Shown one piece after another: positions 2,881 through 61,919 of a stretch of 64,000 bases of DNA; position 1 is the first letter of the stretch; every line of letters starts with the position of its first letter. Source of the stretch: Mytilus californianus. Lineage: Eukaryota. Below the pieces are notes generated by a model, which saw nothing but the letters and a program-made list of their open reading frames with translations, searched no databases and had not been told where the DNA came from. The stretch lies in contig NW_026262712.1 in assembly GCF_021869535.1 (NCBI RefSeq), positions 52,886,001-52,950,000 on the forward strand, read 5' to 3'. The position numbers and the translations under genes are program-made.

Positions 2881-5561
2881 AAAAGCAAATTAGTATTTTA
2901 CTATATCACTTTCATTAATGATTGAACCAAAAAAAAAATCGATGTTTTATATTTTTGTATATCAAGTAGTAAATGCACATTTAATATGCCATTTACAATA
3001 ATAATCAATATGTCAAAATTTTCACAAGAATATTATTTTTTTCATTACTCTTTTGAAATAAGATTAGGAACAATATTAGACTTTGAGAAATTTCATTATT
3101 CATAAAATTTTCATTCTTGAGCTATTGAGTTGTCAGTCAGGAGTAATACTTACACAAGTGTTTTTAATTTACTGGTGCAGGTAAATTATTTTGGAGGTAG
3201 AGTTATATCCCTTAGACCATGTAGACAGTAAGATTTTTTTAAACTTATTTAAGTAAAAGGTCTTATTTTTTTCTATTCTTGAATTTCTCTTGACTACATC
3301 AATTTGCTCTAACAGAGTGTTTAACTGTCTGTCATTAATAGTTGTCTTTACTATTCATAAAAGTCCATTGTAAATTTCATGGACAATGAAAATTTCATTT
3401 GTCTGTTCCCGTACGAAATAAGTAGTAGGATTCCACCTAGACACTAGTAGGAATGTAGTAGGAATCCACATAGAATCAAAGATTCTATATAGAAAGTAGG
3501 CGGACATGGAAAATGAACAAAATTCTGACTGGATTTTTTATTTTCTCCACTTGCAAAATCCTACCATCTAGCTGGAATTTTAAAAGTCTGTATGGATTTT
3601 TTTCTGTTTTGAAAATCTTAAATGGGAATTTGGACAGAAAATATGATAGGATTATTCATTTTCCTACTACAAGATTCCTACCAGAATTAATTTTATTCCT
3701 ACTAGAAAATCTTTCTACATGGAATCTTTTTAATTATCTTAAACTGGATTCCTGTTTGCTAATGACACAAATTTTGCTGTGTTAAATGCAAACAAGTTCC
3801 AGTTCACTAATTCACAAGTTGGAGAGTAGAAATATGAAAAGTTGTGTTGCACCATATGCTGCAAGGGTTAAACAACTACAATATTGAAATATGGGAAAAT
3901 ATGGCCCATGTAAATTGAAGGTAAATTTTATACTTTTAAGATGAAATTTTTGATATGTTTGCCAATATATTTAGTAATCAGTTAATTCAACAATAGTGCA
4001 TTATTTTACATATTAATTGTTCATAACTCTTTAACTTCATCTTAGAATCAACATTTTTGCCCATTTACATATATGTTTGGATATATCACAGCTTCCTCAT
4101 ACATTTCAAAAGTCAACTTTTTTTAAAATGAATATATTCCATGCATTTCCTTTGTTTTTTGTTGTTGAGATTCAAACTTAAATGATTGACCCAGTTGTGT
4201 ATTTGTGAATATACACTTACATTTTGTATATTTTTAGATTCCTACTAGAAAATATTTTTTTCTATGTGGAATTTTGAAAAATTCCTGCCAGGTTTTCTAG
4301 TAGGAATTTTATTTTCCTACCAAATTATTCCTGCTAATTTAAATATTCCTGGTAGGAATATACAATATTCCTACTAAGAAAGTCCTGCTAATTTAAATAT
4401 TTTGGCTATTTTCCGTGTGGATTCCTACTTCTGTCTGACTAGAATATCACTCTTTTCTGGTAGGAATTCAATGCAATATTCCTACTATATTCCGTGTACA
4501 TTCTGTGTGGAATATTTCATACATTTTATCGTCAAAATACAACTAAGCCTCCAGAGAGCAATTTATGAAGGCCTTGTGCAGTTACTTAACATCGCTGCGC
4601 AATAGATTTGTTTTGCTTTGTGTTTGAGATAAAAGGTTGAACTGTACTTAAAAATTAATAAGCAAACCAGAAAAATTCTCTTAAACATTTTAGAGGGTCA
4701 AAAGCAGTCAAATTCATGATCATTGATTTTACTTATATTCTCAAATTTGATTCATAACATACATGACATATTAAAATGTATTTATCCAAATTACAAAAAG
4801 TCCAAAAGAAACATTTAACAGTGCATGGTCTCTGTTTATACTTCAGCATTTCATGCATATTTTAGTCTAACTGCCATCTAAGAAACCATTGAGTTGACCT
4901 ACGAAGACTGCCTATGGTCATATGACCAAATATTAACATAGATATAAATAGACAAGCAGTGCAATGGTTAAATGATGATTTTCTAGGTCTGTTTGATTGC
5001 ATGTCATAGATTAAAAATGTGTAAATAATTGCTTAACCTGTATACATGACATATGAATGATTTTTTTGTAAAGCCTATTCAGCCAAAAAAATTGGTTTTC
5101 CTGGTGGCTCCCTTGTATCACTTTTCAATGTCGATATTCTTTTCTTTTCAATAAGTTATAAAGCTAAGCACATGCATATTCCATCTCCTGAGAAGGGCCA
5201 AATTAAACGTTGCAAGAATATATGCAGAGACGGATTCAAATGAGGTTGAATTATTGACTTGCAAGCCAATGATACATAAGCGATGTATTTGAGCTTATGT
5301 TGACAAAAGTGACTGCAAATCATGCTAATATTGAAAAATTACACTTTGATAATGCTTGAAAAAAATTTAATTCTATTCTGTCTAAATAATAGTTTATTAT
5401 ATTAAGCCCCTTAAATCTGGTTGAATTGTAGCATTAATACATGTACATGTATCCATTAAGTGTTGCATTTCTGCACACTTCTGCACACTCTCAGTCACTG
5501 AAATTTGTGTGCATTTTTTGTGCTATGAAAAACAATAAAAGTTTATTGATTTCATATTTAG

Positions 5562-8500
5562 ATTTGTCTATATCAGAAGTGGATGAAAAACATCCTAAAT
5601 TTGATGAAGGTGGTAACCAGATGGATGATTGTCACAGTCAGACAGACATGAGACCACATTTAGATGGGAATCAGATGGATGATTGTCACAGTCAGACAGA
5701 CATGAGACCACATTTAGATGGGAATCAGATGGATGATTGTCACAGTCAGACAGACATGAGACCACATTTAGATGGGAATCAGATGGATGATTGTCACAGT
5801 CAGACAGACATGAGACCACATTTAGATGGGAATCAGATGGATGATTGTCACAGTCAGACAGACATGAGACCACATCTAGATGGGAATCAGATGGATGATT
5901 GTCACAGTCAGACAGACATGATACCACATTTAGATGGGAATCAGATGGATGATTGTCACAGTCAGACAGACATAAGACCACATTTAGATGGGAATCAGAT
6001 GGATGATTGTCACAGTCAGACAGACATGAGACCACATTTAGATGGGAATCAGATGGATGATTGTCACAGTCAGACAGACATAAGACCACATTTAGATGGG
6101 AATCAGATGGATGATTGTCACAGTCAAACAGACATGAGACCACATTTAGATGGTAGTCAGATGGATGATTGTCACAGTCAGACAGACATAAGACCACATT
6201 TAGATGGGAATCAGATGGATGATTGTCACAGTCAGACAGACATGAGACCACATTTAGATGGGAATCAGATGGATGATTGTCACAGTCAGACAGACATGAG
6301 ACCACATTTAGATGGGAATCAGATGGATGATTGTCACAGTCAAACAGACATGAGACCACATTTAGATGGTAGTCAGATGGATGATTGTCACAGTCAGACA
6401 GACATGAGACCACATTTAGATGGGAATCAGATGGATGATTGTCACAGTCAAACAGACATGAGACCACATTTAGATGGTAGTCAGATGGATGATTGTCACA
6501 GTCAGACAGACATGAGACCACATTTAGATGGGAATCAGATGGATGATTGTCACAGTCAGACAGACATGAGACCACATTTAGATGGGAATCAGATGGATGA
6601 TTGTCACAGTCAGACAGACATGAGACCACATCTAGATGGGAATCAGATGGATGATTGTAACAGTCAGACAGACATGAGACCACATTTAGATGGGAATCAG
6701 ATGGATGATTGTCACAGTCAAACAGACATGAGACCACATTTAGATGGTAGTCAGATGGATGATTGTCACAGTCAGACAGACATAAGACCACATTTAGATG
6801 GGAATCAGATGGATGATTGTCACAGTCAGACAGACATGATACCACATTTAGATGGGAATCAGATGGATGATTGTCACAGTCAGACAGACATGAGACCACA
6901 TTTAGATGGGAATCAGATGGATGATTGTCACAGTCAAACAGACATGAGACCACATTTAGATGGTAGTCAGATGGATGATTGTCACAGTCAGACAGACATA
7001 AGACCACATTTAGATGGGAATCAGATGGATGATTGTCACAGTCAGACAGACATGAGACCACATTTAGATGGGAATCAGATGGATGATTGTCACAGTCAGA
7101 CAGACATGAGACCACATTTAGATGGGAATCTGATGGAAGATAGTGAAAGTCACACATGTATAGGAATATATCCAGGAGGCAACCAGATTCCTGATTGTCA
7201 CAGTCACACACACACAGAAACACAAAAAGATGGTAGTCAGATGGATAATTGTAACAGTCAGACAGACACAAGTACACTTCCAGGTGCTAAACCTTGCATA
7301 GGTAAATTTTGTAGTAAGAACCTAAGCATGTTAAAGAAGACAGAACGTTAACCTATAGTTCTTCAAAAAAGTTGACAGTTAAAAATACTTTAAGTACATC
7401 ATTTCATAGAAAAAGGAAATAGTGTTTGGTCTTTATGTTAGGATTAATGATATATAAATAATATTTTACCATAAATTATGTTAACATGGTTAATGTCCAC
7501 TTTAAAACAATGTTTTGTAACATTTTGGTCATCATTACCTAAATGTAATCCATGAGCATGTCATGATGGGTGAGTGGCAACATTATCCCGTTATGTCACC
7601 CAAGTGGCTTTATGTATTTGTATTTTGAATAACCTGGTGGTACAGGTAAATCTACAGGAGGGAATCTAGAACAAAAATGAGAAACATGTACTAGGGGTGT
7701 CCTGGTGTCTAAAAATCTCAAAATATTACAGCTCAGATTGATTGAACATTGTTTGCTTAACATCCATTGGCAAATATTTCCTGCATATTGTGAAAAATTT
7801 AAACAGCTTTTGAGTTATGGAAATTTGTAAATCATTTATACACTCTGGCTTCCTCCACCAATAAAAACTGGCCACCACCAATTAAAACTGGCCACCACCG
7901 AATAACCAATAGTGTTTAAGTGGCGTTAAAACGCAAAAAATCAATCAATAAATCAGTTATAATTATTACATAACTATTTATTTGTGTCTATTACGTCAAG
8001 TTAGCGCTACCTTTTAAAAATACAATGATGGTGTCATTAAAAGGCTTGAAACTGGGTATTAACCACATAAAATCCGTGACATGCTATTTATTAGTCCAAT
8101 TCCTACTCTCTATACAACAGATTGACAAAACTTCTTGAAAATAAGGTTTATATTTTGTGTACTTTGGTCAATTTCTTCAACATGTCTATCAATGAACAGT
8201 ATTTTGGGCGACAAGTTTTATTACATCTTGATGGATGGATATTATTTCAGTATATGTCCGTTTCAAAAACAAATTGGTCATAAACTAACAACAATATGGA
8301 AATTGATAAACAAAGGAAAACGCAAGTATTTATTTAGAAAACAATGACAATTCTTTAAAAAGTTGCTATCATTTGAGCAGTAAAATCAGCAAACACCATG
8401 AGAATTAGAAATATGGCAGTTTACAAATACTAATAAGGAGAGACAAATAAAACATCTGGGGAACGCATAACAGTATAAATACAATTCATGCATTGATCAA

Positions 8501-10742
8501 ACAACTTTTACTCATTAAAACTCCCCTAGACAGGAGTTGGCCTGGATCCTAATGTTGAAATGTTGATGGAAGTTGACCAAAGATTTACACCCCATGCCAA
8601 TCTTCACTGTTGGCCCATGGCAATGACAAAATCCGCATGAGCCTGAGTGTATTGTGGAACATTTTTTTTAACACAATTTATCTTGCCATATCTGTAGTTG
8701 TGGATTGAATACTTTTCCACAATATGTAAACACAAAGCCATAAATGCATTATTAATTGTTAGGAATTTCATTACTCATAACCCAAATAATTCAGTCGTTA
8801 TATTCCGATGATCTACGATTACTTCATTAACGCCTGAATTAATGCATAGACAATGAAAAATCTTCGATCGATTATGGAGAGGGACTGAATTATTCGGGTT
8901 ACATTACTCATATCAATTCTAACTTGTATGGTAACAATATGAAGACAGATAACAATATTTAAATCTCTGCCATAAACAGTCTTGTCTTAGTTTTTTGTAG
9001 TTGTGATGATTCTCTCGTTCAGCAAATTCAGACTCTGTTTACTTATTCAAAATTTTCTATTTGTTTTTTATAGTTAATTCTAAAGAGTATTCTAAGATTG
9101 ATTTACATGGTAAGGATCATCAAAATGGTGGCTCTCTGATGCAGCTTGATGAACACACACGTGAGTATTTCTTTGGCTAATCAACCTGAGCAAATATCAA
9201 GATTATTCCATATTGAAGGTCTTACTGTGACTTTGAAATGAAGGATGTATGCCCCCTTTGATTTGAAAATATATGATTTTTAGCATGAATTGTCCGAAAG
9301 TTGTTGTATCGCACCGCTTGGCAGTATACATAAAATTTACTGATATTATTCCCCCTTTAAAAAACCTGGATACCCCTGCTTTTAATTACTATATTCATCA
9401 ATTATTGTCAAATCAAGGAAATATTTTTCTTTTAGGTTATTTTGAGCAATAACGCCTTTAAATTTTAAAGCAAAGATTTAAAAAAATGAGGCCTTAAAGA
9501 ATTTGTGTGCTTAGGGCTTTTTCCTTCCTAAAAATTATAGGGTTGGTTAGTCAGAAAACTTTTAAATTTTGTATACAACATTTTTGTTGTTGTTGTTGTA
9601 ATCTTGGAATTTTTTTAATTTTCTCTGAGCCTGATTCCTGTATTAAACCCTTTAATAGAACTCAACCGTTTGTAAATTGTCATAACACATTCAAGTTGTT
9701 TTATTAATTCTGTCATGTATTTTGATGAAATAAGTTTACTTAGCAGTAGCATCAACTTAAGTGTTGGTGAACAGTTTTTGAAGGAATGCTCATAAAAATG
9801 TTGGGAGTTGATCAGGAAACCCACAGGCACTTGTCTCAGAAAAAAAATTTCCTATATACCTTAATATAACAGTGTTATATTAAGGTATATCGGAATTTTT
9901 TTTTCTGAGACAAGTGCCTGTGAGGAAACCCCAAACACATACCTTTCTTTTGTGTCTACAGATTTTTTTTTTTTTTAATTTGTATTTTAGGTAAAGTTGC
10001 TGAAACATTGGTGATTAATAAATTTGGAAATTTGTTACCACAGACTGGAATCTCCCAAGCAAATATAGACAAACCATATAAATGTGATGTATGTGGTAAA
10101 GGGTTTGGCAAAAACGAATTCTTACAGAAACACACTAGAATTCATACCAGTACTAGAAGTTTTAAATGTGGTGTATGCGGAAAAGGATTTTATGAAAACA
10201 GTGACCTAGAGAATCACATCATAAAACATAACGGTGAAAAACCGTATAAGTGTAAAATATGTGGGAAAGCGTTTGTTCATTTTTGCCTTCTACAGAAACA
10301 CATCAAAACACATAACGTTGAAAAAAGTTTTAAATGTGATCTATGTGGACGAGGGTTTGTTGAGAATAGTGACTTACAGAAACACATTAGAATACATACG
10401 GGTGAGAAACCATATAAATGTCACAGTGGTATTTCCAATAAAGATTTTAGCCGAAGTTGTGCTTTACAGACACACATGCGAATACATTCTGGAGAAAAAC
10501 CATATAGATGTGTCAATTGCAATAAAGAGTTTAATGATAGTAGTAGTTTGCATGTTCATATGAGAACACATACTGGTGATAAACCTTACATATGTGAAAT
10601 ATGTAAAAAGGGGTTTAGCACTAGGAGCAATTTAAAAACTCATGAGAGATCACATACAGGGTTAAAACCAGTTCATTGTGAGATATGTGGTAAGGGGTTT
10701 ACTCGTAAAACCGTCTTGGACAATCACATGAAATACATATAG
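5562..10742 (+). CDS. C2H2 (Kruppel-type) zinc-finger protein with a long N-terminal 18-aa tandem-repeat region; 5'-partial model, exons 5562-7301, 9074-9160, 9991-10742
   Basis: Sites are ttcatatttAG|5562, 7301|GTAAAT, ttttttatAG|9074, 9160|GTGAGT and tgtattttAG|9991. All junctions are phase 1 and join one open frame (..DLSISEVDEK-[repeats]-KPCI / VNSKEYSKIDLHGKDHQNGGSLMQLDEHT / RKVAETLVINKFG..). The last exon has 8 finger units with TGEKP-type linkers, stop TAG at 10740-10742. Start codon and upstream exons not identified. Confidence 0.8.
5609..7282 (+). repeat. 54-bp coding tandem repeat (minisatellite): 28 near-identical units plus 3 degenerate units, encoding DGNQMDDCHSQTDMRPHL
   Basis: Unit gatgggaatcagatggatgattgtcacagtcagacagacatgagaccacattta. 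Unit starts run from 5663 to 7121 (27 x 54 bp) plus a first unit at 5609. Three diverged units at 7121-7282. No indels seen. Confidence 0.98.
9822..9922. mobile_element. 101-bp hairpin MITE with 8-bp target-site duplication
   Basis: cacaggcacttgtctcagaaaaaaaa..ttttttttctgagacaagtgcctgtg is a near-perfect palindrome, flanked by AGGAAACC at 9814-9821 and 9923-9930. Confidence 0.85.
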
Positions 10743-11454
<712 letters not shown>

Positions 11455-21100: not shown

Positions 21101-24100
21101 TCTTTCGATTGTTACTACATTTCAGAGAACAAGACGTATTTTGATATTGACATGATATAAGTTTTCACATATTCTTACTGAGAAATGTAAACCTTTGGTT
21201 ACCGAACCTCTTCCGAAATTTTGTATTGCACTGCTCCTCGTATTAAATTGTCATATATCTTTTTTCAGGTTTTTCAAAGACGAGAAAATGGCTATGTTGA
21301 CTTTTACCGCGGATGGAATGACTACAAATCAGGATTTGGGAACCCGAAGAATGAGTTTTGGCTCGGTTAGTTTGCATATGATTTAAATGCATTTTACCAT
21401 TAACATAACCACCAGTCAAAAGTTAAATCAATTGTCTTTTTTTTTCAAATCAGGTCATTTTTTAGTTTGCGTACATTGATTGAATAATACACCTAGTCTT
21501 TACCAAACTACAGTCGGGAATATCCTTTGGAATATTACCGACTTTTGAATCCGGAGTTTATATTTTTTCGACAGGTTACCTACTCTGTGGAAGAACATCC
21601 TGGTGCTGGTCAAGTAAATGAATAAAATTAAGCTTTCACTCGGTACAATTTATGGGGAAAATTAACTGCTTTACATTTTCACGAAAACTGCTTTATATAT
21701 ATACATTTGATCACGAAATCAAAATACTTTAAGCAATTAATATATAAAATGTTTCATTGAAGTGCATAGGGTCATGATTTAATCTTCAATTTAATGAAAT
21801 TTTGAACTTTGTTGCATTATAAACAGCTACGCCACGAGCGCATGATACGCCCGTCGTCTTGTGTGTGACGTTTTATGCAATAATCATAAATCGTTTCTGA
21901 TATACGGCGCGACATGTGAAAACCCCCCTTTTTTATAAAAAAAGTATACAGATCCCGCTGTTTTAGTTACAAAGCCCCGTTACTCAGGAAGTTTTAATCT
22001 TATCTTCGCCAAAAAGTATACAGATCGTTTGACCATCTTAAGAAACAACTATGAAAAGTTTCACGGATAAGACGTTCTCAAGTTACGGTACGACATGTGG
22101 ACGCCGGACAGACGGACAGATGGACGCCGGACATTTGTATACCATAATACGTCCCTTCAAAGTTTTATTTTGACGGGCGTATAAAAACAAACATTAGGTC
22201 ATGGTGGTCTCTTACTTGTGTGCTCACCTCCTGTGGGAGAGGTGTAGGTTTTATTTCAGACAAGGTGAAACCAATTACTGTAAAATTGACATTTGCGCTA
22301 TGTTCACAGCATCTGGGAATTAAGGTATAATAGCAAATTTTTACTGATCGGCTAGGATTCAGACAATCATGTGTCATTGTAGGGTGTGACATGTCTATCC
22401 GAGGAAAATAGAATATTCCATGCAACGGAAGGTAAAAAATTACGGCAATTACGGCAAGGTTTGAACTATAATGCATGGACATGTACGTCAATTTTACGGA
22501 AATTTTTGGAGTACTTTTTTGGAGAAGATGTTACTAAGTTGTCAAATTTGTGTCTGATCCAATATATTTGTCATTTTGAACACAACAATACCGATATATT
22601 TAAACTAATCATCCCATATCTTTTTATATTTTATTTTGTGTTATTTTTAGGCAACGAAAATTTGCACTCTCTAACATCACAACACAACTATGAAATGAGG
22701 ATCGATTTAATCGATTTCGATGGAAACGCGGCATTTGCAAAATATAAAGTTTTTGCAATTGGAGATGAGAGTTCGAAGTTCAAACTAACCGTAAATGGAT
22801 ATCATGGCACTGCAGGTACAAATTTGATCATATTTCATGTTTAAGGTATTTTGATATTCTTAGTTTTTTTAGTTGTATGGGTTCACTGTACTTAAACTCG
22901 ATTTGATGAATACGAAACGTGAATAACTTTATTTATTAATAGAATGTCGATTTTTTTATTAAAGTTTTACTTCATGGTTCTTAATTAAAGTAAAACAAAT
23001 AGCTTGGGATTAAAAAAAACCCAACAGTTAATTATATGGGCGCATGGCATTCAGTGCGCCATTTTTTACAAAATCCAATCTGTCATTTGCGCCACAAGGT
23101 TATATTTCATTTGCACCAAAAAATAAAACTACATTTGCGCAATTTTACAGGTGATATAGCGAAAAAGTTTAAAATATTCATTGCTTCATCGTGAATAAGA
23201 TTTTTTTTTAAGTATTCCACCAAGTACGTAACTATGCAAGTTTAAACTCAATTTCTAATATTGAACTGAGAGTCACTTAATGATAACATGTTTTATGTGT
23301 CAAGATAGACATTATCAATTCTGAGACAAACAAGCCGTTATTTTTTCAATTGGATTGTTTCATATTTTTCATTTCGGGGATGTTTATATCCGACTATATG
23401 GTATGGCTTTTTTCTCATTTTTGAATGCCTACAATTGCTTTCATCCACTTCATTAATTTTGGTGAATAGTTGTTTTATTGGCAATTAAACCACATTTGGT
23501 TATTTTTATGTAGAGAAAATAAGTCTGTATTTTTTATGACCACACATATAGGTTATCCAGTGTACATGAGTACGTCCGAGCCGTTGCTAAAAAGTCTTGT
23601 TTCAGAACGAACTTTTGGTTTTACTCCAGTGTATAGCGCTTACTTTTAGGTTTTATGATCTCTTTAATTTATAACAGAACTGTGTTTTAACATTATCATG
23701 AAAAGTCTCTTATTATAACGTATCAGTATATATATATATATATATATATATAGTGCTTTCATTATAGTTAGTAATACGATGATTTCAGAGGAATATGTTT
23801 TATTATGTAATCAAATAATGTGTTTTAAAGTTATTATTAAAAGTCTCTTTTGAATAAAACTAGTTCTTATACTATTTACCTGTATTATTGGCGCAAATGA
23901 AATGTTTTATTTTGGCGCAAATGAAAAATGGTTTGTGGCGCAAATGAAAGATTAGTTTGGCGCAAATGAAATGCAAAGCACTGAATTATGTAACAAGGTG
24001 GGTACTGACATATCTTCCTAAAGAATTTATACCTTGATTAACTATTATTATAAGAATACTGAATAGAAAATCAAATATCAAAATTGAGCAATACAAACCC

Positions 24101-39261: not shown

Positions 39262-42200
39262 TAGATGTTTTGATCGTCGTTGACCTCTGGAGATCACATA
39301 ATCCTGTCACTCACATTGAACATGGCAAAGGAAATGAAAGCAAGAAATAGTGGTTGTAATGAATTAAGCTGTGAACGAACAATTAGCAAAAGATATACTA
39401 CACGAAATAGAAATAGCTTATCAACAAATGAACAAAGTGTGCCATCAAAACAATCAGGTACAATACAAAAACATGTCCCATACACAACCACCTTTTAAAA
39501 GCTGCGTCACGTAAAATCGATGCATCAAATAGGGTATTAGATATAGAAACTGAGGTTAAGTTTAACAACATTATTCAGACATTTACTGCAGGGGCTTATG
39601 AACAATTTAAATCTGCTCTGAGTGGAAGCATCATTGTAGCAAAACTAAACACGACAACAACCACAAAACAAAACCGACAGGGTCTAATCGTTGAAGAGTC
39701 AATCTCAGTCGTCCAAGAGATCAGGAGAACAGTCACTTTAGAATTATGAAAAATGGAAATCGCAAACTTAGGTCAACCCAGAGACAACTAGAAGCGGTAG
39801 CCAGAAAACAAAAGTTTGAAAACATCATGACAGCTAGGGAAGATGACCAAAAACTCTTCTTTAAGTTGGTAAATGATCAACGAAGAACCGGTATGGAAAA
39901 AACATCGCAACTGAAATTTAAGAATGGTATCTATGACAACCCTGATTCAATAAGGAAAAGGTGGGCTGAGTATTTTGATGAACTAGCAATACATTCAAGC
40001 TCTTACAGCGAAGATGTTCTATACAACAACCAAATAGAGTTAGACTGTCTGTTATTTGAAGATACATATATCTCAAAGTTGCAAAATAGCGAAAAAATAT
40101 CTGCAACTGAAGTGCAGGTCGAAAAGGTTATTAGCACTTTAAAGAACGGAAAAACAGCCGATTGTGCAAACTTGCCAAGTGAACCTTTTAAGAATGGAGG
40201 TCAAATAATAATATCAGCAGGGACAAAACTAATCAATATGATCTTTAATGTATGTTCAATACCAGATTTATTCAAACTCAGTATAGCAACGCCAGTGTAT
40301 AAGCGTAAAGGGAAGCCACTGGATGACCCAAACTCATATAGGAAAATAACTGTATCCAGCATTCTAAATAAAATACTAGAAAAATATATTTAGAAAAGAA
40401 AGATGAAACACTCAAAAATGTACAGAGCCCACTACAACGGGGTTTCACTAGGGGTGTATCTGGACTTTATGCAGCTTTGATACTGAATGAATTAATTACA
40501 GAGGCGCAGGACCTGCACATGCCATTATATGTTGCCTTTCTTGACGCCCAGAAGGCATTTGACTTAGTTTGGAACAGTTCATTACTGCGAAAGCTACATC
40601 AAAGTAGTATTGAAAGTGACTCGTGGCTTATGTTCAAGGAATGGTATAAAGATTTAACCTCACGAATAAAATGGGAAAGTTAACTATCAAAAATCTTCTC
40701 TGAAAATCAAGGGGTACGACAAGATGGAGTAACCTCCCCTGCAGCATATAAATTTTTTATCAACCCAATGCTGGATCATATAGAGACTCAAAATTTAGGA
40801 AATTATATTGGGCCAATTTATTGTGGCACTCCAACAGTAGCAGATGATGTATGTCCGGTCTCGAACAACCCAGAGGATCTACAAGCAATGCTTGACATAC
40901 AAGGGGATTATGCAAATAAAGAACACTACTGTATACGTAAAACAAAATCATCTGTGTTTCAAATTGATGACAAACAATCCAGAAACATGAGAAATTTCAC
41001 TCTGAACTAGGAAGAGATTCCAACGTCACAATCTGCTGTTCATCTAGGTATTGAAAGAGATAACTCATCAAAGTTTGGCACAAAGAATGTTAGCAATTCA
41101 AGGATCAGTGCTGCAAGAAAGGCAACCTTTGCACTGATGGGAGCCGGCCTGCACGGTCTGAACGGACTAAACCCCACTTTATCTATCCATATTATCCGTA
41201 TATTTATAATACCAAGACTCATACCTGGACTTGAAGTAGTTAGATTAATGGTTAGTGATACAAAAGCACTGTCATTTTATTTTAAACAATTGTTAAAACG
41301 TATCCAACATCTACCAGAAAGAACAGCTGATTCAGCAACTTACCTTTTGTCTGGTCAGATGCCAATAGAAGCGGAAATTGATAAAAAAAACTTTAACTTT
41401 GTTCGGAAATATTATAAGAAACCCAAATACAGTGGAGTTTAAACTCGCACAGAGACAATTAGCTATCAAAGACAAAAGTTCCAAAGGCTGGTTTATCTGT
41501 GTTCAACAGCTATTGGAGAAATATAACCTACCTTCATCATCAGCACTGCTACAAGAACCACCAGGAAAATTCACATGGAAAACCTTAGTATCTAAATCTG
41601 TAAAATTATATTGGACAAACAAAATACATTCTGAAGCCCGTGAAAAATCGACTCTACAATATATAAACTTTGACCAATTAACTTTTGATAATCCACATCT
41701 AGTATGGAAAAGTGCAAAATTTGAATAGTTCTCAATCCAGAGGGCAGGTATCAAATGCACACTCATGTTAGACACTTATCTACTTCAAATCCATAAACAA
41801 AAATTTATAAGTATGAAGTAGACTCAACCTATTTATTATGTCATAATTGTGCTGAGGATAGGAAACCTTTTTTAATTCAATGTTTCGCTTTTGACAGTAT
41901 AAGAAGTCCATTCTTGAAACTATTACATGGAAAAACCACTAAAAGATGTGAAACTCACTGATGCAATCTTTGAACAGCCGGATGAGTAGTTGTCTTTGAT
42001 TCTTGATTGTACAGGATATAAAGTTATCCTCCATCTAGACATGAAGAATTTGAGGCAGTGAGCATAGGCCTGTGCTTTGCATTACACATTGAGAGGAGTA
42101 ATAGGATTAAGACTTTACAATAACTGTTGTCCTAGCAGAAGTGCGATATGGTGTCACAGGGTGACAGGAACATTAATTTTCAATGTATAGTGAGAGTATA

Positions 42201-42479: not shown

Positions 42480-45400
42480 AATATATATTTATTAAAGATA
42501 AAAGGCATGAATTTGACAGATACAATATATATATTACAATGACACAGATATAGCACTAGACATAGTTCATAGACACTAAAATGATTTACATGTTTACTAA
42601 ATATTTTAATTTAAAAAAAAATTATGAAAATGTTCATGATATTTTAATAATATGAATAGATTAGATTAAATAATGAGTGAAATTCAAATTGACTAGATTT
42701 TCACTGTAGCCTAATATCTTAGGATGACCCACAAAAGTTATCAAAACTTATTTCCAGTGTGGTCCTTTTATGACGAGACTTCTAGTTTACACAAAGGGTT
42801 GACACATAGAAATACAAACACAAATCATTTAGAATTTATCACAGATAAATGGTCAAAGTCCCAGTATAATTAATAAAAAACAAAATTCACTATTAAAGAT
42901 GGATTTGAATTTATCCATCAAAAATTTTTCACTTGTACTTTAAAATTATATTTTTGGAGCAACTTTTAATCATGTCTGGTAACGAATTCCAGTCGTTTAT
43001 CCCATTATAAAAGAAAGTGATGGATTCACACCCTTTAATTCCTGGTATATAATAGTTTTTACTACTAGATCTTGTATTGAAAGATGTTTCATTTCTAACA
43101 AAATTAGTATGAAAATAATTTGGGCATATATTGTTAAAAATGTTGAAAACATGATTGAGTCTTAGTTGTTTGACTCTATTACTAATATCAAAAAGCCCAA
43201 TTTCTTAAATTAAAAATATGTCACACTATTTCTGGGATGTAATTGCAGAATAAATCTCACAATCTTATTTTGTGCCACTCGAAGTTTATTCTTCATTTGG
43301 TTTTGATAAACCTTCGTACCAGCATGCACATGCATAGTCAAAATGACATGGAATCAGAGAAGAGAACAATGTTTTCCTAGATTGAAAATTTAGACACTTA
43401 TTTTTCTTATATAAAAATTTAAGCCTTTGATTGACTTTTTTCACTTTAGAGTTGACAATAAAATCACCAGTTAGAAACTGATCAATTATTATTCCCAAAT
43501 ATTTTACAAAAGTTTTGGATTCAATATTAATACCATAACAGAAGATAGCAAAATCACCCGATATTAAAGACCGAAGTTTTCGACCAGGACCAAAAATTAT
43601 ACTCTCCGTCTTTCCCAAATGTAGGGACAATTTGTTGTCAGTTACCCAATCATAGCATGATTCCAGCATTCTGGATAATTTATGCTAGATGACCCCAGTG
43701 TCTATATGGGGAAATTTCAGTATCATCTGCATATATCAAAACTTTACAATCTGAGTCGATGCCAGTTTCAACATCATTGACATAGATTAAAAACAATAGT
43801 GGACCCAGTAGCTACCTTGAGGGACACCACATGTAATATTACATACTTCTGAAATCACCCCATTTACACTTACAACCTGTTTTCTGTTTGTCAAATATGA
43901 CTCAAACCAAGGTATAGATCTAACCCCAATCACTTCTAATTTTTCACATAATATCTTGTGATCTACTGTGTCAAATGCCTTCTGAAGGTCTACTAGGACC
44001 ATGCCTGTAAAAAGACCTTTGGCTGTTTGAGTTTTAATGTGATCTATCAAGTGAATGAGACAAGAATCAGTTGAATATGAACTTCTAAATCCTGATTGAA
44101 ATTCAAATAATAAATTATTTGAAATCAAAAATTTTACAAGTTGCTTATAGGCAGCTTTTTCTAGAATTTTAGAAACAATACTTAAAATGCTAACAGGCCT
44201 GCAATTTTCATGCTTAAGTTCGTCATTTTTCTTAAATAGGGGCTTGACCATAGCAATTTTCAGATCGTCAGGTACCGTACCTTCAGATAGATAAATTTAT
44301 CAAGAAAGTAATGGGTATTTTCAGAATTGGGGCTGCATCCTTAAGAAACCTTGCTGGAATACCATCTAGGCCTATGCTCTTACTTATATCTAAACATAGT
44401 TCTTTATACACAAATTCCTCTGTTACATGCTTTAGGTTAAAAAAATATCTAATTTCCTTCTCTGAACATAAAAGGATCTAACAATATTTGTAGTGGCACT
44501 ATATAAACCCTTTGCAGTTGGTAGTTTTTCTACCTGTTTTGCAGCTATAGTTGTAAAAAATATGTTAAAATTATTTGATATTTTTTTGTTATCGTGACAG
44601 TTTTGCCCATCAATATTTAATACTATTTAGGATATGATTTAGGATCTTTTCGATATCCTAAATTTTTAAAACTTTTCCAAAGTTGTTTTGAATTATTTCT
44701 ATTTTCTTTAATTTCACTCCTGTAATAATCAGATTTTGCAGTTTTGCGTGATCTTTGAACATGATTTCTAAGTAGCTAAACTTTTTGAAGTCTTCAGGAT
44801 TTTTAGAAATCTTAAAAGTCAGATAAAAATGTGTCTCTCTGCTAAATATATATCAAAATTTCAGCTGACATCCATGGTTCTGTTCTTTGTTTAATACAAA
44901 CTTCTTTAAGAGGGGCAACGCTGTCAAGAATATCCATAAAAATTTCTTTAAAAAATGACCAGGCCTCATTTATGTCTGAGGCACTGCAACACCTTTCCCA
45001 TTTTGCTTTAGTAAGCTTAGCTATAAATTCCTCTTCATTATAAGATTTCACAGATCTAACTTTAACTTTACTGTGCTTATTATATACAGAATTTGCTTTT
45101 TTTTCTAGTACAATATACCATACAATGATCACTAAAACCAATATTTAGTACACCAGACTGAGAGATTTTCTCAGTATTATTACATAAAATATGATCTATA
45201 ATAATATATTACAGATGCTGTAAATTCTGTAATTCTTGTTGGCTCTTTAATAATTTGACTTAAATTAAACAATTTTAAAAGCTCATTAAAAGATTTATAC
45301 AGTGATCCACTCTGATCTTTAAAACATATGTTCAAATCACCAAGTAATATAATTTCACAATCCTCTCTTAGCTGAGACAAAACTTTTTCAAATTTCTCAA

Positions 45401-45925
45401 CAAAATTACAATTTTGAGGGGGTCGATAACAAGTCCCGACAAAAATAGGTTTAGATTTTGGTAATAATAATTCAATACACAAAAATTCATCATTATTGTT
45501 TATTTCGTCCAAATTCATTGGTGTAAACGCAAGATTTTTTTTTAATGTACATACACACACAACCTCCACATCTGTTACGGTCTTTTCTGATAATAGTGTA
45601 TCCAGGGATGTTAGCCTCTGTATTGGTTATCGTTTCATCAAACCAGGTCTCGGTTACAGATATCACTGCTGCGTTTTTTTAAAACGCAATAGTCTGTAGC
45701 TCAGGATTTTTTGTAAGTAACGAGCGGGCATTCAGGTGAATAAAGTGCATTCCCTTCTGGAAACATTTAAAGACTTCATCAGAATGTATATTGTCATTTT
45801 TTGGAGCTTCGTATTTAACTGCACACCTACACATATTACTGTCATTACACTTTGAACAATGGATGAAGCGATTCCTAAATGCGTCGGACTAATACATGCT
45901 ATAAAAACAACAGAAACTGTCAATT
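42480..45925 (-). mobile_element. Degraded CR1/L2-group LINE with near-complete ORF2 (APE + RT)
   Basis: By frame-hopping: HLNARS..VISVTETW (~45650-45750), VGTCYRPP, LLGDLNI, CRPVSILSIVSKILEK, FQSGFR, VDLQKAFDTVDH, GVPQGS, KLSLHLGKT, KYLG. Minus-strand AATAAA at ~42488-42493. Confidence 0.85.
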
Positions 45926-51009: not shown

Positions 51010-51995
51010 TTTTGTCTCGCCTTGACGAAGTCAAAAAGCGAGACATAGGTATGCTGTTTCCTGTGTCGGTGGCGGTGGCGGCGTCAACAATGTATTAGTT
51101 TGCGATTAGGTCTAGTTTATGGTGCCCCACTAGTGGTAGATCAATGATATTTGATATGCAGTTGTATAAGCATTGGCACATCTCATTACCATGGAGATTA
51201 TTTGGCCCCACCCCTCAGTTATGGGCTATTGGCTTTGAAACTTTGCTTAGTTTACATGTATTAGTTTATGATTAGGTCAGTTTATGGGGAACCACTAATG
51301 CTAAGATAATGATAATTGGTATGCTGTTGTATAAGCGTTGGCATATCTCATTTCCATGGAGGTTATTTGGCCCCGCCCCCTCAGTCATGGTATATTGACT
51401 TTGAAACTTTTGCTTAGTTTTCATGTATTAGTTTGTGATTAGGTCAGTTTATGGGGAACCACTAGTGGTAGGTCTATGTTATTTGGTATGCAGTTGTATC
51501 AGCATTGGCATATCTCATTACCATGGAGATTATTTGGCCCCGCCCCCTCAGTTATGGTTTATTGACTTTGAAACTTTTGCTTAGTTTCCATGTATTAGTT
51601 TGTGATTAGGTCAGTTTATGGGGAACCACTAGTGGTAGGTCAATGATATTTGGTATGCAGATGTATTAGCATTGGCACATCTCATTACCATAGAGATTAT
51701 GTGCCCCCTCCCCCTCAGTTATAGTCTATTGACTTTGATAATTTTGTTTAGTTTACATGTATAATATTACTTAGTGTTTAGGTTTGTTAAAGGGAACTAC
51801 TTATGATAAGACATAGTTTTTGGTATGCAGTTGTATTAGCATTGGCACATCTCATTTCCATGGAGATTGTTTAGCCATGTACCTTCAGTCATGGTTCATT
51901 GACATTGAATACTTGCAAAACTTACATGTTAAAGTGTTGTTATTTTAATTTCAACATTTGCATTATAGAAATTATAAAAAGGCGAGACATATCTC
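51010..51995 (+). mobile_element. Helentron-type element with about five 167-bp internal tandem repeats
   Basis: tttgtctcgcc..gcgagaca 5' stem-loop, GGC microsatellite, unit starts at 51094, 51260, 51427, 51594 and 51761, 3' aaggcgagaca. Confidence 0.75.
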
Positions 51996-56282: not shown

Positions 56283-57298
56283 ATTTTTGTCGAGCCTGCG
56301 ACTTTTGTCGCAGAAAGCTCGACATAGGGATAGTGATCCGGCGGCTACGGCGGCGTTACCTAACTTCTTAAAAGCTTTATATTTTAGAAGCTAGAAGACC
56401 TGGATGCTTCATACTATGTATATAGATGCCTTATGTTACGAAGTTTCCGTCTGTCATATGTCCATTGTCCTTGACCTCATTTTCATGGTTCAGTGACTAC
56501 TTGAAAAAAAATCAACTTTTTTTGTAATGTTAATTTCTTTCTTATTATGAGTGATAGGATAACTATATTTAGTATGTGCGTACCTCTCAATGTCCATTTT
56601 CATGGTTCAGTGGTCAAAGTTAAGTTTTTGAGTTTTGGTCTTTTTTTCTAATACTATATGCAATAGGTCAACTATATTTGGTGTATGGAAATATTTTATG
56701 ATGTACATGTCAGTCTCGTAGGTTTTATTTGACCTTGACCTCATTTTCACGATTCATTTCTCAGTGTTAAGTTTTTGTGTTTTGGTCTGTTTTTCTTCAA
56801 CTATAAGCAATAGATCAACTATATTTGTTGTATGGAAGGATTGTAAGGTTGTCTGTATGGCAAGTATCATCTTACCTTGACCTCATTTTCATGGTTTATT
56901 GGTCAATGTTAAGTTTTCATGGTTAAGTTTGTTTCTTAGATATTATAAGCAATAGGTCAACTATATTTAATGCATAGATTGATTGTAAGGTGTACATGTC
57001 TGTCTGGCAAGGTTCATCTGACCTTGACCTCATTTTCATGGTTCATTGGTCAATGTTAAGTTTTCTTGGTTAAGACTGTTTCTTAGAAACTATAAGCAAT
57101 AGGTCAACTATGTTTGGTTTATTGAATGATTGTAAGGTGTACATGTATTTCTCGTTTGGTTTATCTGAGCTTGACCTCATTTTCTTGGATCATGTTAAGT
57201 TTATGCGTTACTTGTAGTAAAGCTTTATATTTAGGACTATCAACATAAAATCAATGGTTAGTAAAGAAGGCGAGACATTTCAGCGTGTGCACTCTTGT
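56283..57298 (+). mobile_element. Helentron-type element with ~125-bp internal repeats; a 3' fragment of the same family at ~13560-13670
   Basis: ttttgtcgagcc..gctcgaca 5' stem-loop, GGC tract, repeated gaccttgacctcattttcatggttc, 3' aaggcgagacatttcagcgtgtgcactcttg. Confidence 0.75.
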
Positions 57299-61550: not shown

Positions 61551-61919
61551 ACGTACGTACGTACGTCCCAAAATTGGTTTCCGTTATCTATCTTGAGTTT
61601 GCCTCAACCAAATGTAATGAAACTTATACACAATGCTTATTACCACAAAACACAGATCAAGTTTGAATTTTGGTGGTGTCACTTTATCCGTTCTAGAGTT
61701 ATGTCCCTTTATAAATGGAAAAATTGCAAAATTTTTAGTTTCCGTTCTCTAACTTAAGTTTGCCTCAACCAAATGCTATGAAACTTATACACAATGCTTA
61801 CTACCACAAAACACAGATCAAGTTTGAATTTTGGTGGCGTCACTTTAACAACTCTAGAGTTATGTCCCTTTATAAATGGAAAAATTGCAAAAAAATTATT
61901 TTCTAAATATCAAGTAAAT

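Follow-up and report, generated by a model that had tools for sequence, protein, structure and literature searches.

A recently expanded in-frame 54-bp minisatellite in a putative exon of a poly-C2H2 zinc-finger gene pair of the mussel Mytilus californianus

Two described systems come closest to the locus reported here. The first is the human gene PER3, in which an exon carries a VNTR of 54 bp, or 18 aa, per unit; it is present in 4-5 units and is both expressed and polymorphic (PMC4164614). The second is PRDM9, whose zinc-finger array has been termed a coding minisatellite (PMC3890296). The mussel locus lies in a window of 64,000 nucleotides, which is the whole stretch of DNA that was analysed and to which positions without a prefix refer (Table 1). 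In this window, a 54-bp tandem array fills most of a putative exon that is located upstream of a C2H2 zinc-finger exon, and the two are referred to here as copy A. A tandem paralogue, copy B, has the same orientation and is situated 64 kb farther downstream.

The interpretation to which the evidence inclines, by a modest degree of confidence, is that copy A of this poly-C2H2 pair has an older, lineage-restricted exon within which an in-frame minisatellite has expanded very recently, most likely without any specific function. The array would probably be a case of the usual instability of repeats rather than the birth of a protein domain.

Table 1. Features of copies A and B, with their positions in the window or, for copy B, in the prefixed downstream stretches.
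Feature	Position	Strand	Remarks
Dispersed transposon-like repeat just upstream	4902..5380	.	2240 first-look genome candidates, 69-76% identity
In-frame ATG, candidate start codon, 36 bp upstream of AG	5526..5528	+	Same place in copy B
Putative phase 1-1 exon, 1740 bp	5562..7301	+	AG before, GTAAAT after, frame open
Unit 1, degenerate edge unit	5603..5656	+	6/54 positions off consensus, all in first 15 bases
Units 2-28, 27 homogenised 54-bp units encoding HLDGNQMDDCHSQTDMRP	5657..7114	+	7 unit types
Units 29-31, old degenerate units	7115..7276	+	11-17/54 positions off consensus
Short dispersed MITE-like element in intron	8766..8920	.	1012 first-look candidates, 82-92% identity
Predicted 87-bp phase 1-1 cassette exon of the initial annotation	9074..9160	+	AG and GTGAGT, open frame
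C2H2 exon, in-frame part: leader, 6 intact fingers, finger without its second Cys, TAG-cut last finger	9991..10742	+	
1-bp deletion relative to copy B, frameshift	10735..10737	+	A/B alignment
Four further intact fingers, out of frame	10739..11113	+	End at TAA 11111-11113
Ancestral stop codon, common to A and B	11204..11206	+	
Copy B repeat exon, 339 bp, five units	L003:6054-6392	Same as A	Sequence comparison
Copy B finger exon, 476-aa frame, 16 fingers	L004:8211-9643	Same as A	Sequence comparison

The 54-bp array and its open frames

The array accounts for 1674 of the 1740 bp (96%) of the putative exon. A T-rich tract ending in AG precedes the exon, in which split codons contribute two bases at the start and one at the end, giving it a 1-1 phase. 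Tandem Repeats Finder delimits the array at 5611-7268, counts 30.7 copies with a period of 54, and gives 93% for matches and 0% for indels; in the coding register it comprises 31 units at 5603-7276, in which neither an indel nor a stop codon occurs. It has the form of a coding minisatellite, as its 54-bp unit, a multiple of three, is repeated 31 times in frame and without interruption. In all these respects (coordinates, number of units, phase, share of the exon and absence of indels and stops) the initial annotation was correct. In the 1.65-Gb genome searched, the array is single apart from the short paralogous copy in B.

The units in the interior of the array are nearly uniform. Each of units 2-28 departs from the consensus at 0-3 of its 54 positions, and their mean pairwise divergence is 3.0%. 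Their types, which follow one another in an irregular order, recur in blocks of 2-4 units. Three of the seven variants are synonymous and four are not, and with only seven variant types the array itself holds no information on selection. The degenerate units 29-31 correspond to units 2, 3 and 5 of copy B, and in them the coding frame is the sole open frame. The consensus unit of the array consists of the tail of unit 1 joined to the head of unit 29, which indicates that the amplified piece was one 54-bp segment lying over the boundary between the old units 1 and 2.

The exon frame that encodes HLDGNQMDDCHSQTDMRP is free of stop codons and would give about 579-580 aa if translated. The antisense strand is also fully open across the array, as a 560-aa ORF on the minus strand (5595-7277). 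For a random 54-mer with the composition of the window (32% G+C), a given frame is open with P = 0.24, and two open frames among six across the array are what is expected by chance. With the antisense strand open as well and a probability of this size, a long open frame alone is no evidence of coding. Indeed, in a row of nearly identical copies, each a multiple of three in length, the openness of the frame is automatic. A coding origin had been deduced from the lack of indels and stops together with the clean splice sites and the degenerate edge units. The sites stand, but the open frame does not serve as proof.

It is scarcely credible that the antisense ORF is the true coding frame. Apart from being open over the whole array, it reaches a weak summed Pfam score to DUF5038, but no single DUF5038 stretch rises above threshold. 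Stops occur in every antisense frame of copy B and of the degenerate units of copy A, and a synonymous excess is absent in all antisense frames; for these two reasons antisense coding was rejected.

The paralogue and the age of the exon

The repeat exon is found in two places only in the 1.65-Gb genome, namely, in copy A and in copy B, which spans C132:52956054-52969643. Collinear similarity between the two copies extends from about 5190-5222 to at least 11474; besides the repeat exon and the finger exon, it takes in parts of the intron. It begins within the dispersed repeat that lies upstream of the putative exon. A duplication boundary inside such an element suggests a repeat-mediated duplication.

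In copy B the exon consists of five degenerate 18-aa units with 65% mutual identity. Its acceptor and donor motifs are identical to those of copy A, and an identical run of 23 bp lies over the acceptor. Every frame except the splice-compatible one is closed, the five others having 2-15 stops, and only 0.04% of base shuffles of copy B leave the coding frame open (P = 0.0004). Once the array of copy A is collapsed, its exon aligns to that of copy B with one indel of 3 bp and another of 54 bp, neither of which shifts the frame, whereas the immediate flanks contain nine indels, seven of them frameshifting. Frameshifting indels thus number 0 in 282 bp of exon vs 7 in 485 bp of flank (P = 0.017). 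The base composition changes at the same borders: the G+C content of the exon is 0.415 in copy A and 0.38-0.41 over both copies, as compared to 0.29-0.31 in the flanks, and it rises by about 10 points at both exon borders in both copies. These observations support the older coding origin that had been proposed for the array, and in this comparison the stretch has the behaviour expected of a genuine exon of some age that was recently expanded.

The age of the expansion can be judged from the same alignment. Divergence between the exons of A and B amounts to 15%, vs 3% between pairs among units 2-28. Together with the recurrence of unit blocks, this difference supports a recent homogenising expansion, as the initial annotation had suggested.

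It is quite improbable that the stretch was never an exon and is a non-coding intronic or intergenic minisatellite with an open frame and AG/GT borders that arose by coincidence. A frame that stays open so easily by chance, on a locus where the antisense strand is open as well, would agree with such an origin. So would the upstream region, where the unique sequence shared by A and B before the exon is only about 180 bp long and is preceded by the transposon; blastn and tblastx comparison of the upstream regions gave transposon matches only and no upstream exon common to A and B. In addition, the libraries searched hold no annotated protein with the repeat peptide. A coincidental frame is, however, hard to reconcile with a degenerate copy B that is open in the splice-compatible frame alone, with the lack of frameshifting indels in the exon next to seven in the flanks, with the identity of the splice motifs in A and B or with the G+C step at both borders of both copies.

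The repeat exon could also be the first coding exon, starting at the ATG at 5526, instead of an internal one. In copy B, a further in-frame ATG occurs at about L003:6074, six codons into the exon, where A at -3 and G at +4 make its context a strong one. Copy A has GTG at the opposite position, 5580-5582. This difference could bear on the start of translation in each copy.

The DNA around the pair contains several other elements. An ORF at 22386-22844 (+), between the two zinc-finger copies, carries a Fibrinogen_C fragment (Pfam E = 8.5e-17) and is probably an exon of a fibrinogen-related gene. Fragments of non-LTR retrotransposons are located at 43286-45569 (-) and 39746-41728 (+), with a reverse transcriptase match at E = 1.8e-18 and an endonuclease match of 23.5 bits, below the Pfam cut-off of 27.4 (E = 5e-5). 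Tandem arrays with units of 147-167 bp are present at 51090-51914, 56595-57193 and 61577-61892 of the window and at L003:3473-3788 and L003:8007-8450; a 161-bp tandem unit occurs in three places between copies A and B.

The zinc-finger exon and its lesions

The finger exon is readily recognised by Pfam (zf-C2H2, E = 8e-44; zf-H2C2_2, E = 9e-58), and its fingers follow one another in tandem with TGEKP-type linkers, as in other poly-C2H2 genes. Its leader is found in the genome only in A and B. The phase of the finger exon accepts the repeat exon either directly or via the 87-bp exon. The predicted attachment of the repeat exon to a C2H2 array is in this respect sound, but the array to which it would be attached in copy A is damaged, with 6 intact fingers in frame vs 16 in copy B.

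The predicted 87-bp exon had been regarded as looking like a further diverged relative of the repeat. Between 58 and 63% of shuffles score as high against the unit as the exon itself, and no counterpart of the exon was found in copy B. Its identification as a diverged repeat unit was rejected, as the similarity is no better than that of shuffles. Good splice sites and an open frame are the whole support for this predicted exon, the sequence of which is unique in the genome.

The reading frame through the fingers of copy A is interrupted at two points. A premature TAG at 10740-10742 results from the 1-bp deletion near 10736, and a TAA is present at 11111-11113 where copy B reads GAA. In one finger of copy A, 6 bp have been inserted and the second Cys is gone (Cys to Ser). 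Relative to the intact copy B, the shift of frame, the nonsense codon and the missing Cys are disabling lesions of the kind expected in an unprocessed pseudogene. In addition to its six in-frame fingers, it retains four out of frame. The functional member of the pair is probably copy B.

The two copies also differ in the number of fingers. Copy A is without 252 bp, corresponding to three 84-bp fingers, that are present in copy B. Four near-identical tandem 84-bp fingers occupy about L004:9000-9330 of copy B, where copy A has one (10894-10990). To judge from this alignment, the finger array also varies in copy number in the manner of a minisatellite. Decayed finger remnants follow the old stop shared by the two copies (after 11206). 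A 30-bp direct duplication at 11139-11199, in the last finger remnant of copy A, is not present in copy B.

The dN/dS ratio of the finger exon is 0.4-0.7 both upstream and downstream of the frameshift, a value that describes the A and B lineages jointly, with no outgroup. Equal constraint on either side of the frameshift indicates that the lesions are recent and that copy A was constrained for most of its history. As the stop is located in the last exon, after six intact fingers, copy A could still encode a functional protein of reduced length. From its sequence, it may be a pseudogene of recent origin or else a protein cut down to six fingers which puts up with an overgrown, disordered N-terminal region.

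Assembly errors classically occur in long tandem arrays and at single-base indels, and either the length of the array or the frameshift in the finger exon might be an artefact of this kind. Such an error is very improbable. Seven unit types in irregular order and without indels are unlike a collapsed or inflated repeat. Likewise, a mere change in homopolymer length would not account for the 1-bp deletion, and the other lesions (the TAA, the change of Cys to Ser and the 6-bp insertion) are independent of it.

Constraint, predicted product and relation to known systems

The residues encoded by the repeat exon show a different history from its frame. Between A and B, dN in the repeat exon is 0.19 and dS is 0.08, and the differences at codon positions 1, 2 and 3 number 17, 14 and 11. 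Among the units of copy B, pS is 0.33 and pN 0.35. No amino-acid-level constraint was found in the repeat exon, either between the paralogues by dN/dS or between units by pN/pS. The dS of the finger exon (0.14-0.23) and the intron blocks, with 85% identity, can be taken as neutral yardsticks, and the 15% divergence of the repeat exon matches the neutral level that they suggest. A reading frame that seems to have been kept while its residues were not is a pattern typical of a disordered spacer.

The predicted product of 579 aa is of unusual composition. It contains 20.6% D, 10.4% H, 10.4% Q, 9.2% M and 5.5% C, whereas F, W, Y and V make up 0.2% or less each; its pI is 4.45 and its net charge about -90. 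AlphaFold2 modelled eight units without secondary structure at a pLDDT of 38.7, which is weak evidence, as it was obtained from a single sequence. Each 18-aa unit has one Cys, and the CxC motif is absent. The suggestion that the repeat might form a metal-binding domain amounts to pure speculation, given a Cys content of only 5.5%, the missing CxC motif and the lack of a Pfam match. Indeed, Pfam assigned no family to the repeat exon and no recognised N-terminal effector domain (KRAB, SCAN, BTB, SET or similar).

Homology searches were run exon by exon. A word-based protein search returned no homologue of the repeat exon, and the BLASTP-type check for relatives of the unit that had been recommended gave no homologue in two protein libraries. 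A profile of A and B was compared with 1.84 billion representatives, a library that holds one protein per 50%-identity cluster. It produced one match (P0121), an ORF with a 9-aa repeat, which was rejected as a homologue of the repeat exon, being a compositional match to an unrelated repeat. Nothing was found in the ESM Atlas, by exact look-up of the ORF or in a metagenome scan for the core of the unit. When the finger exons of A and B were used as queries, with sequence of copy A entered from 9995 or 9996 onward, only generic zinc-finger proteins were recovered, at no more than 52% identity. From these searches, the A/B pair appears to be a small lineage-restricted subfamily without an annotated product in the libraries searched.

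The segment might nevertheless be a functional effector: an extended disordered stretch, acidic and rich in His, Cys, Met and Asp, carried by a working protein of six to seven fingers. The roles proposed for it are those of an acidic activation, condensate-forming or metal-responsive module, polymorphic in length and tunable. This is possible but doubtful. In its favour are the conservation of the splice sites, a fitting phase and a frame that was maintained historically, as well as the position of the stop at 10740 in the last exon, with six fingers still encoded, and the composition and charge described above. On the other hand, the residues are unconstrained between paralogues and between units, neither a homologue nor a family match exists in the collections searched, the fingers of copy A are degrading, and the array is too young to bear any trace of selection. 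A bolder form of this idea, in which a newborn polyanionic domain of about 500 aa with spaced His, Cys, Met and Asp residues is expressed, varies in length and acts as a metal-responsive or condensate-forming effector, is unlikely.

In the favoured account, that of a young minisatellite in an older exon, the ancestral exon would have consisted of five degenerate 18-aa units before the finger exon, an arrangement still visible in copy B. In copy A, a single 54-bp segment across the boundary of units 1 and 2 would then have been amplified about 27-fold. The pattern of the units points to slippage or unequal exchange, involving blocks of one to four units, as the mechanism of amplification. The expansion would have been neutral, to judge from its place in a region without amino-acid constraint and in a gene copy with truncated, decaying fingers. 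Translation, if any, would yield a polyanionic segment of 579 aa, predicted to be disordered.

Should copy A be expressed, it would offer a clean and datable case of a protein region enlarged five-fold through the amplification of a minisatellite, and the ancestral form without the expansion would be available nearby as a reference. It would then be useful for the study of the origin of disordered repeats and of their tolerance by transcription factors. The locus also carries a caution. An open frame over a tandem unit whose length is a multiple of three comes about automatically and is uninformative on selection; the informative evidence is provided by the degenerate paralogue and by the condition of the remainder of the gene.

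Bulky hydrophobic residues are typical of acidic activators. The mussel segment resembles acidic disordered activation regions in its strong acidity and in its predicted disorder and linkage to a DNA-binding array. It differs from them in that it is not conserved and is nearly devoid of F, W, Y and V. In the finger arrays of PRDM9 and the KZFP genes, tandem coding units shift in number by unequal exchange (PMC3890296), and the fingers of the A/B pair appear to behave likewise. However, the 54-bp array is not made of fingers but lies N-terminal to them and has no DNA-contact logic. A further difference is that this array shows no sign of diversifying selection. In comparison with the 4-5 units of the expressed and polymorphic PER3 VNTR (PMC4164614), the mussel array has 31 units and is hosted by a damaged gene copy. 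The likeness to PER3 is otherwise close, as both repeats have a 54-bp unit encoding 18 aa, are in frame, are lineage-restricted and lie in a region without a folded domain.
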